NCBI GenBank assembly: GCA_001600695.1
Contig: BCKQ01000001.1
Span: 1,510,171-1,574,170, forward strand
Source: Ascoidea asiatica JCM 7603
Taxonomy: Eukaryota > Fungi > Ascomycota
Reading direction: 5' to 3'
Length of the DNA: 64,000 nucleotides
Below, piece by piece: positions 46,528 to 50,931 of the stretch; the first letter of the stretch is position 1; each line of letters opens with the position of its first letter. The notes below the pieces were generated by a model, which was given only the letters and a program-made list of their open reading frames with translations, searched no databases and had not been told where the DNA came from. The translations under genes and the position numbers were made by a program.

Positions 46528-47346
46528 TTTTATTAATAGTTTTTTTGGTTAGATTTTTAAATTCGGTTCTATATTGAAATTAGATTTGGAATTAAAGTGA
46601 AATTAATAAGAATTTTAAATCAAATCATTTTGAAGCATATTTATATTTTACTTGATTATTTTTGAGCATTTTCGAAAAGATGAATTATTCTAAATAATTT
46701 TGGCTCCATAAAAAAATGAAAAGCTACTAACTATGATAAATAAGATAATAGCCAATCAGCAAGATATTTTCAGACAGTTCCAGTAAGTTCCGAACATATT
46801 CTAAAGTAAAAACAAAAGAGTTTGATTTGATATTCTAAATTGATTATTATTATTATTTTTATTATTATTATTTGCAGTAATTTTATTATTATTTATCTGA
46901 ATATTATGAATGTAATTCAATGTTGGTGTTTATTGATTGGTATTTCAATTTAGCTTTCCCCGGGGTCTGTGAACAAATAAAGAATACGGTTGAAAGAATT
47001 AAAAAAGGATTTTAGAGGAAGTTTAAATAAAGAAAAAATAATAATCTACTATGTTTTTCGTTAAAAAATGAAAAATCAATTAACCACAGGCTACATTCTA
47101 TTACAAAATACAGAAAATGATTCCAAAAAAGAGTTTTTTATTATAAGTGAATAGAAAAAGTTAATAGATAAGAAACAAAAGTAAATATAAAAAAAGTAAA
47201 AAAGTTTTTAGTAAAAAAGAAAAAGAGTTATAAGTTTTTTCATATATTTTTTTGTATTTTATGAATTTTTTTTTGGGGTTTTATGATTTTGGGAATTTAT
47301 TAGGAGTTTTTTGGATATGTTTATTTAGTTATTCTTTTTCTTTTTA

Positions 47347-48675
47347 TTAGAAAATACCACCAGGAAATTTATTATCAATAGTAGGATTACTTTCAACTGT
47401 TAAAAGCATCATTCCATGAATTGAGGTATGATGAGGTTCATTGAAAAGATGGTAAAATATTTTAAATATATCTCCAAAGAACTTATCTACAATATGTTTG
47501 ATGAATTATTTGGTCCAGTCTACAAGCTTTTCTTTGGTATATTCATCAGCAAATCTTTCTTTTCTACAATAAAAAACGTTGAATCCAACAGAATGTGATC
47601 AGGATAAAGCATCAGCAAAATCAGAATCTGATGATGTACTTGACATATTATAAAGATTAGAAGAATCAGTATTATCATTTCTTTTAACAATGGAAGAAAA
47701 TTGTTGGACATCTTTGCCTTTGACATAAATTTTATCATCTTTTTCAGCTGAGTTTTGTTTTTTATTGTAATATTGATAAATTGCACTAGTTTCAGGAGTA
47801 TAAGCTCTAATAATACATTGACTTCCATTTTCAAATAATCCAACTTCTAATTCAATATTTCCCATAAATATAGAAAATTCCCATTTTTTAACTTTTGTTT
47901 TACTATTTTTAGTTTCCTAATTGAGAATACTTAGTAAAAACAATTTTATTATTTGAATCGTAACCAATAATTTCTGATGATCAAAGTTTATAACCTTTTT
48001 TATCATGTTTCATAAATCTATTATTTACAACTTCCTTAGCAAAAGCAAAATGACTAAATTTAAATTTCTTCTTACAATTGAAATCAGAATTAAAATCAGA
48101 AACATTTTTATTTGATTATGATCAATTGTAACAAGAGTAGTACCTACAGTTAAAATCAAAGCAGAAGTAATTAATAAAGTGCTAGAAGCAGTCAAAGTGG
48201 TTCCAATTGAATGAGCACTACATTCAAATGCTTTTCCTGGTGCAATTTTCCATTCAGCACAATTACCAGCATGAATAAAAACACCACTACAAGAAATGGA
48301 CATTTTTGCAACATTAAAAGCAAGACCAACAAAATTTTCCATAGCAGATCACATTTCACCTGCAATTAAAGTAGTTCTAGCGGGTGTAAGTCCATTATCA
48401 GTTAAATTTTTTTGATTTTTTTTAAATTATGCATAATTGAAGTTATTAATATCGATTGCAGCGCTTTCGGTACTTTTGACAATACTATTATTTACAATAG
48501 TAGTAGTGATATCGGGATTGACTGATTGCTCATCATTTGAAGTGGTGGTTGAGTTGAAAAATAAATTGAAAGATGAACCTAAAGTTGGAGGTTGAGATGG
48601 TAATGGAACTGGAATTGATTGAACAGTTAACAAGATTATAAGATTAGTTCAAAAAAATTTAGATGATAATCTCAT
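47347..48675 (-). pseudogene. Disrupted secreted preprotoxin gene, K1/KKT killer-toxin-like (~442 aa reconstructed)
   Basis: ATG at 48675 followed by a signal peptide. Six internal stops (48649, 48427, 48349, 47981, 47599, 47506) and two compensating frameshifts (~48113, ~47917). Cys-containing hydrophobic alpha-like region, Kex2 KR at 47680-47685, beta-like GFNVFYC segment. Confidence 0.7.
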
Positions 48676-49908
48676 TTTGAAATTCAATTTAATTACTTAA
48701 TTATTTACTGTAGTTATTAATATTATGATTGATTTTCTTTTATTTTTATATTTTTATATTTTTATTACTAGTATTAAAATAGTATATTAACCTTAATAAT
48801 AGAAAATAAAGATTAAAATGTAAAGAGCAAAAAAGAAGAAAAAATATAGACTCTCCATTTAGCAGAGAGAATATATTCTGTTTATATATTCAATTTATTC
48901 AGTATAATTCATCTTCAAAGATTGATTATATTTTAGATGAATAGCAAATTACAATTATTTACATGTTTGATTTTGCTTTCATTAGATAACATTTTAGACA
49001 TTTAAGGAATTAGATATGATAATTCAGATATTTAGTCGTGTTTGATTCCAATTTATTATAGAAATATCATAACTTATAAACTTTATTTTATTTGAATTAA
49101 TCTATGTTATCTGATTCCATTATATCATAATATTGTACTTTTAATATTTAAAAAAATGGACCAAAAAGTAGTGTTATACGGAAGATTCTATTCTTTATAC
49201 CATGGTCTGTACCACAAATATGGTTTCTACTTTGATATATGCTGTTCGATAATATACAAACACAGATAACACTGATATTTTTTTAATCATTGTTGAAAAA
49301 AATTGTTGCTACTTGAACTTCAAGTAACATATAATATTAAGCAACAATTTACCACTTCCTATTCAGAGTTTCTTATTGTGATTTTCATTCAGTTTTGCTG
49401 TATATTTTAGAATTTTCAACATAGTATGGAACGCAAAATCAAAAACTCCAGTCAAAAATAAAGTTCAGCTTGATGCATTATAAAGCATATGATACTTGAT
49501 CATAAACGTTATTTTAACAATCTTAGAAAATGGTTTTTCATATTTACAAGTTTCTGCAGTTATACAATTATTGAAAATTGCAGGCCAAGTACTATATTAT
49601 AGCTTATAAGTAAGAATTTCAAATAGTTCAACAAACCAATTTCCTAATTTAAAGCAAATTAACAAAAAGGGAATTAAAAAATTTTAAATAGAATCTTTTC
49701 AGTTCTTTTGAGATTAATTGGAAAAATGCCAGAAAAAAAAAGTGAAGCAAAGTATGTAAAGTTTAACAGCATTAGTTTTGAGAATACTAGCAATCTACAT
49801 TTTTACAAAAATTATTTTATACATATGTAAATTAGTGAAATAAAAAAAAATTAAAAGAGAAGTTCCAAAGAGATTAGGCAATAAATAAATAGAAATTTTA
49901 TCTTTAGT

Positions 49909-50931
49909 TTAATTCAAATTCATCAGATTACTGAAAGTCGAAATTTCATTTGAGCATGACATTTGATTAATTTGAAAAGACTCTTGACTACCATTTGGTT
50001 GATGAGTATCAATGTTACTTAAATTATTCAAATTGCTTAAACTATTCAGGAGATTTATATTATTCATATTGTTATTTGAATTAGAATAACTTATAGAATG
50101 TATAGAATTTAGAGTCCGGGAATTAAGATTATTATTCATAATATTTAAAGATGAAGTTAAGACTTGGATTTGATTCTCTAATTCTTTAATTTTCAAATTT
50201 TTTTTTTGAAGTATTTGTATTATTTGCTGCTTATTCATTTTCGAGGTTTGAGTAATTTCACGGTCCATACTATTTTCATTTTGATTTTTATTTTGATTTT
50301 CAGATTGATTTAATTTATTACACATTTGATTCTGTTTATTATTTGAAGCGGTATTTGATTTATTTAATAGATTTGACTGCCCCACTTGTTCTACCTGCTT
50401 TGACTTTTGTGATAGATTTGATTTTTTGAAATGTTTTTGGTTATTTGATTCTTTTCCATTTTCTTGACTATTTTTTGATAAAATATTGCTTTTTTCACTT
50501 AATGTTCCCATTTTCTGATTTGGAGGTCTAATAACCTTGATACCAGCGCGATTAATCATTCGTCTAATATATCTTGAACTAATTGGCTTTTCTGGATTAT
50601 TAGGCTTAACTACTTTTTTAAATAAATCATTAACATAATCAAAAGACAAATAATTTTCATGATTTTCATAAGTTCTCAATAACTTCAAAAAACCTTCTTT
50701 TTCCTCATCACTAATCAATTTTTGTTTTTCGATTTTATCTTCCATAGAGCCACTTGTTTTTCTTAATTTTTTATAAAAACCGGATCTATCAATGGCGTAG
50801 TCTTTACAAATATCTGTTACTTTTCTTTTCCTTTCAAAAGATCCTCGATTGATATATTCTTTAATTGCCAATTGATATCTTTGTTCCTTTTCTTTAATTT
50901 GTTCAAGTGACACAAATTTTTTCCTTGCCAT
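49909..50931 (-). CDS. Pogo/Fot1/CENP-B-like tandem HTH DNA-binding protein lacking the DDE domain
   Basis: psq-like HTH (YQLAIKEY...VTDICKDYAIDRSGFYKKL) then CENP-B-like HTH (QKLISDEEKE...ISSRYIRRMINR), followed by a Q/N-rich linker and coiled coil. Confidence 0.65.
   Translation of the reverse strand: MARKKFVSLEQIKEKEQRYQLAIKEYINRGSFERKRKVTDICKDYAIDRSGFYKKLRKTSGSMEDKIEKQKLISDEEKEGFLKLLRTYENHENYLSFDYVNDLFKKVVKPNNPEKPISSRYIRRMINRAGIKVIRPPNQKMGTLSEKSNILSKNSQENGKESNNQKHFKKSNLSQKSKQVEQVGQSNLLNKSNTASNNKQNQMCNKLNQSENQNKNQNENSMDREITQTSKMNKQQIIQILQKKNLKIKELENQIQVLTSSLNIMNNNLNSRTLNSIHSISYSNSNNNMNNINLLNSLSNLNNLSNIDTHQPNGSQESFQINQMSCSNEISTFSNLMNLN

Follow-up and report, generated by a model that had tools for sequence, protein, structure and literature searches.

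A decayed chromosomal gene of Ascoidea asiatica and its intact paralog: a candidate K1-type killer-toxin-like family

A gene on the minus strand of the 64,000-nucleotide stretch of Ascoidea asiatica JCM 7603 DNA analysed here (the window) is certainly dead, carrying eight disabling lesions in a single coding sequence that we rebuilt from three reading frames, from an ATG at 48675-48673 to a TAA at 47349-47347. As far as every search could see, it belongs to a three-member family confined to this genome, one member of which keeps an intact frame. We lean, with considerable reserve, towards the view that the product of this family is a secreted, membrane-active protein of the K1 killer-toxin-like type that is processed by Kex2, and that the window copy is the oldest relic of the family. 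An initial annotation, made from the letters of the window, had read the locus as a dead gene for a secreted, multi-domain, cysteine-bearing protein in an internal, gene-dense setting, and this reading is borne out by our analysis. The kinship with the K1 toxin of Saccharomyces cerevisiae that it also proposed fares less well: the sequence signal is suggestive at best, homology is not established, and descent from K1, K1L or the chromosomal K1-like KKT genes is possible, not demonstrated.

A dead gene and its two paralogs

The coding sequence of the window copy lies in frame 0 down to about position 48118 and again from 47916 on, while the stretch between 48115 and 47918 lies in another frame. 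It shares 83% nucleotide identity over 1.33 kb with its closest paralog, and the lesions were placed by base-by-base DNA alignment to this paralog, with the codons then checked individually (Table 1). The alignment confirms the count of six in-frame stops and two frameshifts in one gene that had been proposed from the window's own letters. Since the first stop falls at codon 9, the window copy yields no product. All eight lesions are reproduced in read-derived data: Logan contigs match 47419-47839, 47836-48609 and 48583-49100 with zero differences and zero gaps in three DNA runs, which come from two samples and two studies of the same organism and may include the assembly's own source data. 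A second set of Logan contigs, with 56-95 differences to the window, corresponds to the paralog. Because contigs identical to the window carry the lesions, an assembly error is ruled out.

We give next to no credence to the idea that chance reading-frame fragments of AT-rich DNA, and no gene at all, make up the locus, or that it owes its form to an assembly artefact or to a genetic code in which TGA is a sense codon. The low G+C content of the window (25.6%) and the share of TGA among the stops (four of six) would fit such an account, but both paralogs show long open frames, with protein identities of 59% and about 80%, and the contigs from three runs agree with the window exactly. In addition, where the window copy has stops the paralogs read W, G, R/S, L and R/K, and neighbouring genes such as GPM1 and ATM1 translate normally in the standard code. 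As the stops fall on different paralog residues, five different amino acids in all, they represent mutations, and an alternative genetic code is ruled out.

Table 1. Positions of features in the window copy (window coordinates) and in the intact paralog (residue numbers).
Copy	Feature	Position	Strand	Basis or remark
Window	5' flank/promoter region common to both paralogs	48676..49023	-	blastn of flanks, three-way alignment
Window	TATA-like ATATATAA	48882-48889	-	214 bp upstream of ATG; kept in all three copies
Window	Start codon (48675-48673) and 20-codon signal-peptide remnant	48616..48675	-	cut by TGA at codon 9; hydropathy of intact paralog
Window	Lesion: TGA	48649-48651		W in closest paralog
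Window	S/T/N-rich pro-region, delta-like	48397..48615	-	carries TAA 48427-48429
Window	Lesion: TAA	48427-48429		
Window	Alpha-like domain	48118..48396	-	Gly/Ala-rich helix, Cys, loop, Cys, hydrophobic helix
Window	PAR in alpha-like domain, non-conserved	48376-48384	-	
Window	Lesion: TGA	48349-48351		G in paralogs
Window	Cys codons of alpha-like domain	48289-48291 and 48220-48222	-	
Window	Hydrophobic helix of alpha-like domain	48130-48207	-	
Window	First frameshift site	48116..48117	-	DNA alignment and agreeing contigs
Window	Lesion: 1-bp deletion relative to paralog	near 48117		frameshift
Window	Gamma-like charged domain, best-conserved family block	47680..48115	-	holds TGA 47981-47983 and second frameshift
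Window	Lesion: TGA	47981-47983		R or S in paralogs
Window	Lesion: 2-bp deletion	near 47917		second frameshift
Window	Conserved Cys in QCII motif, gamma-like domain	47809-47820	-	
Window	Conserved KR closing gamma-like domain	47680-47685	-	
Window	Beta-like C-terminal domain	47350..47679	-	TGA 47599-47601, TAA 47506-47508; terminal Cys gone
Window	Lesion: TGA	47599-47601		L in paralogs
Window	SYC-type motif (YCRK), beta-like domain	47560-47571	-	
Window	Lesion: TAA	47506-47508		R or K in paralogs
Window	Terminal Cys codon gone	3' end of window copy		C in both paralogs
Window	Present stop codon TAA	47347..47349	-	codon check
Window	3' flank common to closest paralog; duplicated unit ends here	47212..47346	-	flank blastn and alignment
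Intact paralog	Hydrophobic signal, VQS before likely cut	residues 1-20		
Intact paralog	S/T/N/D-rich stretch, three sequons	residues 21-60		
Intact paralog	Gly/Ala-rich helix closing at Cys 97	residues 66-98		
Intact paralog	Short hairpin	residues 98-121		
Intact paralog	Cys directly ahead of next helix	residue 122		
Intact paralog	Strongly hydrophobic helix	residues 126-155		
Intact paralog	Sequon common to all three copies (NIT/NIS/NVS)	just after 155		
Intact paralog	Charged middle domain, most conserved	residues 180-312		Cys 267; C-terminal KR 311-312
Intact paralog	C-terminal domain	residues 313-411		Cys 339 in SYC motif, long predicted helix, last residue Cys 411

Searched in all six frames, the genome (20.3 Mb, 71 contigs) yields exactly two further family copies. 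One, at G000:C2:2178555-2179787, has an ATG start, a signal peptide and 411 uninterrupted codons, and so supplies the kind of intact paralog that the initial annotation had suggested looking for; the other, at G000:C2:791617-792918 (L002:742-2046, minus strand), is open but for codon 37, a TGA that corresponds to TCA (Ser) in the window copy. Synonymous divergence groups the window copy with the single-stop paralog as its sister (dS 0.25) and places the intact copy as their outgroup (dS about 0.5). Counted against the 411-residue copy, the window copy has gathered 44 private amino-acid changes since the split and its sister 15, a difference that points to relaxed constraint on the window copy; with so few private changes in the sister, its premature stop looks recent. 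Between the two open copies dN/dS is 0.54.

The duplicated unit measures about 1.86 kb (window 47212-49023) and includes its own promoter, with similarity among the copies reaching some 350 bp upstream of the ATG and some 135 bp past the stop. That the copies have this upstream sequence and a TATA-like box in common indicates that they spread as DNA duplicates, and for the same reason we reject a retro-copy of a satellite transcript. All three copies lie at internal sites, far from the ends of their contigs (2.71 and 2.50 Mb) and amid core genes: the window copy has GPM1, ATM1, an Rpr2-type RNase P subunit and a lipid-droplet hydrolase as neighbours, and NAD synthase and GLE1 lie beside the second copy. 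No tRNA gene occurs within 8 kb on either side of the window copy, and this, together with its internal position, leads us to reject a subtelomeric or tRNA-targeted insertion. The suggestion that the gene was captured from a dsRNA element or acquired horizontally finds no evidence here, as the copies share a promoter, have no tRNA nearby and are not subtelomeric.

Two observations on the surroundings may be recorded. The genome, which is very AT-rich, is odd for a budding yeast in its size of 20.3 Mb, its 71 contigs, the 25.6% G+C of the window and its many Asn-rich low-complexity proteins. A 340-residue N/Q-rich ORF adjoins the relic (window 49909-50931, minus strand); it matches no transposase or HTH family in Pfam at E<=10, and its best row, Mating_N at E 0.006, is below that family's cutoff.

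Domain layout and predicted processing

The three copies, read together, bear out the K1-type order proposed earlier for the window copy: a signal, a pro-region, a hydrophobic region with cysteines, a spacer closing in KR and a C-terminal domain. All of the peptides quoted in support of that order are located in the window copy. One of them, GLTPAR, had been taken to end the pro-region in the manner of a Pro-Arg cleavage site; the peptide is present, but its Pro-Arg is private to the dead copy, and both paralogs read PAG instead. In the intact paralog the N-terminal hydropathy peak (1.33) falls at residues 8-26, and small residues at -3 and -1 (VQS) are found in all copies, consistent with a cleaved signal peptide. 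A second and higher peak, 1.91 over 19 residues, falls at 133-151.

Five cysteines are conserved (97, 122, 267, 339 and 411), two in the alpha-like, one in the gamma-like and two in the beta-like part, and the window copy retains codons for all except 411. The terminal cysteine is the last or second-to-last residue in both open-frame paralogs. The KR at 311-312 is the sole dibasic site conserved family-wide and is followed by DE, ND and ND across the three copies, while the alpha/gamma boundary has runs of KK and is devoid of KR or RR. The C-terminal 250 residues are highly charged, with 48 K+R and 38 D+E. The sequon past the hydrophobic helix is kept in all three copies, which argues that this region is lumenal. 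On the same strand of the window copy a second frame stays open for 107 codons (47520-47843, minus strand); this ORF is open in the sister paralog as well (L014:4488-4811), and is probably a by-product of AT-rich codon composition.

On the strength of this layout, we propose that the intact protein is a K1-type secretory preproprotein that would enter the endoplasmic reticulum through its signal peptide. Its pro-region could be N-glycosylated. In the alpha-like module that comes next, the hydrophobic helix may be the membrane-active part, and would be shielded during export by the gamma-like middle domain. Kex2 would cleave at the conserved KR-x-acidic site, and the beta-like C-terminal domain would be held on through the conserved cysteines. 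The mature product of such a pathway would be a pore-forming, killer-toxin-like antifungal protein.

Searches for relatives

K1-type killer toxins are so divergent that most of them escape sequence searches. We tested kinship directly against K1, with K1L and KKT covered indirectly through the library search; for the comparison scripts the window copy was joined with an X at each break, and for database searches it was used piece by piece. The K1 sequence was a 316-codon ORF on a 1801-nt contig (L017:14-961:+), found with a degenerate DNA pattern in the viral collection and named 'M1 killer toxin' in UniRef and nr. BLASTP of K1 against the intact paralog returns a non-collinear best HSP with an E-value of 0.30, and a collinear HSP in the beta part, which pairs the SYC and YKL motifs, with an E-value of 0.48. 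The motifs that the initial annotation had lined up with K1 by eye are real and are paired by BLASTP, but the similarity is at chance level. The non-collinear match joins residues 59-87 of the intact paralog to 238-266 of K1 (10/29 identical), pairing the Gly/Ala-rich helix of the paralog (M-x-x-A-x-G-N-x-x-G-L-A) with a helix of the K1 beta domain, and it may be either chance or a hint of rearranged modules.

Profile comparisons give a similar picture. Aligning the family to K1 with hhalign yields a probability of 0.9%, and less than 3% overall; the family HMM gives K1 0.8 bits, a score equalled by 55 of 2000 domain-wise shuffles. With the three-copy profile, hhalign scores of shuffled sequences reach the real score in 1/100 cases for the beta-beta pair, 1/100 for alpha-alpha and 11/100 for gamma-gamma, and five non-collinear domain pairs are at chance. 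One further non-collinear pair, family alpha against K1 beta, rivals the collinear ones (1/60 shuffles), and the alpha-alpha score is mostly that of one hydrophobic helix laid on another, a kind of run that shuffling breaks. Overall the shuffle tests against K1 are marginal, with p of about 0.01-0.1. K1 itself has no match in this genome at E<=10, and in the word-index search it matched nothing but itself.

Wider searches were equally spare. Exhaustive HMMER with the family profile against 1.84 billion representatives, public proteomes included, gave no match at E<=1e-3; with this result and the hhalign and HMM scores, the profile-level membership in the K1 family that the initial annotation had anticipated is not upheld. 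Pfam, searched with the six stop-free pieces and both paralogs, gave only chance rows at E<=10 and no match to DUF5341, and a sequence search of the PDB gave a single chance row (E 4.6). A word-index homology search found no match with the intact paralog (E<=0.01) or the family alignment (E<=10). Neither metagenomes nor viral contigs yielded a related locus, a degenerate DNA pattern written for the conserved FN[EK]PHHTSIHG block had no match in metagenomes, and a search for encoding contigs showed the protein not to be on record. It was a PSI-BLAST search with K1L that first brought the KKT genes to light, at e<1e-80 (PMC7888664); the family, if it is kin to KKT, is far more distant than these genes are from one another. 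Members of the K1 superfamily share only 8-32% mutual identity (PMC13211469), so that a blank sequence search is not unexpected.

AlphaFold models of the intact paralog, built on a shallow alignment, are unusable, with a mean pLDDT of 40.7 at full length and 35.6 for residues 61-411; at this low confidence, strands appear at 242-272 and a long helix at 350-380. Foldseek with the better of these low-pLDDT models found no meaningful match at E<=1e-3 in BFVD and the PDB. The models published for K1 and its homologs are likewise of low confidence (bioRxiv 10.1101/2024.10.11.617966).

The ESM Atlas (7.7 million clusters) provides a lead. Nearest to the intact paralog there lie three unnamed clusters from Ascomycota, 378, 313 and 272 residues long, with scores of 0.90, 0.85 and 0.84, and the same three clusters are the nearest neighbours of K1, at 0.88 each. 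The 378-residue cluster is also K1's top structural neighbour (TM 0.46 over 197 residues). This uncontrolled coincidence, for which 'recognition' of the paralog was low (1838), is unlikely to arise by chance if the search is specific; the three clusters might, alternatively, be hubs that attract secreted fungal proteins of poor recognition. We regard it as a pointer that makes the K1-type reading more likely, and not as proof.

Alternative readings and comparison with known killer toxins

On the main rival reading, the same features could belong to an orphan membrane or cell-surface protein of the secretory pathway with no killer-toxin kin, in which case the K1-like order would be a coincidence and the window copy simply a dead paralog. 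Such a protein would be anchored by its signal peptide and the helix at 126-155, with the Lys-rich C-terminal two thirds cytosolic or structural, and we regard it as a possible, if doubtful, account. Its appeal lies in the length and hydrophobicity of the helix, which suffice for a true transmembrane segment, in the heavy charge of the last 250 residues, and in the absence of any significant match, be it to K1 or to another protein; it would also accommodate an internal rather than subtelomeric location, and a family in which the middle domain, and not the putative toxic alpha part, is best conserved. On the other hand, three conserved cysteines in the C-terminal part, the sequon beyond the helix and the single KR-x-acidic site fit a lumenal, processed protein better, the family and K1 have their three nearest Atlas clusters in common, and the inactivation of two of the three copies fits the high turnover reported for KKT genes (PMC7888664). 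At the opposite extreme, the gene could be a true member of the K1/K1L/KKT sequence family, captured from a dsRNA satellite or gained by horizontal transfer, that later became a pseudogene. The layout, the short collinear motifs present in K1 and the multicopy, often pseudogenised state of KKT genes (PMC7888664) speak for this, but we consider it improbable: the exhaustive profile search is blank at a threshold far more lenient than the level at which KKT genes were found, K1 does not match this genome, the shared upstream region with its TATA-like box marks DNA duplicates and not satellite retro-copies, and the position is neither subtelomeric nor near a tRNA gene.

Between these stands the reading that we favour, of a Kex2-processed, membrane-active protein of K1 type. 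In its fuller form, which we hold tentatively and at a little under even confidence, the three copies represent a new sequence-orphan branch of the K1-type pore-forming killer preprotoxins, in a very AT-rich yeast outside the known KKT hosts, that was duplicated as DNA into core regions and is now decaying. If this is true, the range of K1-type antifungal proteins extends to a new yeast lineage, and such toxins live and die at internal chromosomal sites, not only in subtelomeres or on dsRNA; the intact 411-residue gene would then be a new antifungal toxin candidate, with the window copy a record of its turnover. The window copy itself is inert; it is of value as a dated relic, and for having led to an intact paralog open to assay. 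Should the family encode no toxin, the window copy would be an ordinary pseudogene, derived from an orphan gene restricted to its lineage.

Compared directly with K1, the family has the same delta-alpha-gamma-beta order, a middle part ending in KR, and cysteines near the start (SYC) and near the end of the C-terminal part. In both, a cysteine stands directly ahead of a hydrophobic helix, and the short motifs G-x-K-x-SYC, YKL and a terminal acidic-F-x-G-x-C occur collinearly in K1 as well. The differences are equally clear. The cysteines are distributed 2+1+2 (five) in the family and 3+0+3 (six) in K1; the intact paralog is 95 residues longer than the 316 residues of K1; and the family is without RR at the alpha/gamma boundary and without a conserved Pro-Arg, although some K1 homologs likewise lack the Pro-Arg and alpha/gamma sites (bioRxiv 10.1101/2024.10.11.617966). 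The helix of the family is strongly hydrophobic, whereas that of K1 has been described as amphipathic and pore-lining (PMC13211469), and the family resides on chromosomal DNA with its own promoter, whereas K1 is encoded by the M1 dsRNA satellite of S. cerevisiae. At the gamma/beta boundary, K1 homologs follow the consensus 'LAKRxDxP' (bioRxiv 10.1101/2024.10.11.617966), and the KR-x-acidic site of the family fits its KRxD part.

KKT genes, the chromosomal K1-killer-toxin-like genes of Kazachstania, Naumovozyma, Tetrapisispora, Torulaspora and Pichia (PMC7888664), resemble the family in being chromosomal and multicopy, with pseudogenes at least as numerous as intact copies (PMC7888664). The dN/dS of the open paralogs is within the range of 0.23-0.72 reported for KKT paralogs (PMC7888664), the gamma/beta site is of the KR-x-D type, and KKT proteins reach lengths of up to 390 residues. 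Unlike the three internal copies described here, KKT genes are mostly subtelomeric or beside tRNA genes, and their best-conserved domain is alpha, whereas in the family it is the middle domain.

By predicted fold, the K1 superfamily comprises K1, K1L, K2, K21, KHS, K45 and K74, which have as their core a membrane-active central helix wrapped by a 4-7-stranded antiparallel sheet, with a disulfide that pins the helix to the preceding element, and which carry a strand-helix-two-strand motif towards the C-terminus (PMC13211469). The family differs from the K2/K21/KHS branch in that the intact paralog does not match Pfam DUF5341. It shares with the superfamily, and with SMKT of Millerozyma farinosa, a hydrophobic central helix in the alpha part and, in a model of low confidence (pLDDT 36-41), a beta-rich middle and a long C-terminal helix. 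Moreover, Cys 97, which closes the first helix, and Cys 122, directly ahead of the second, mirror the positions that are joined by the disulfide of the K1 superfamily.
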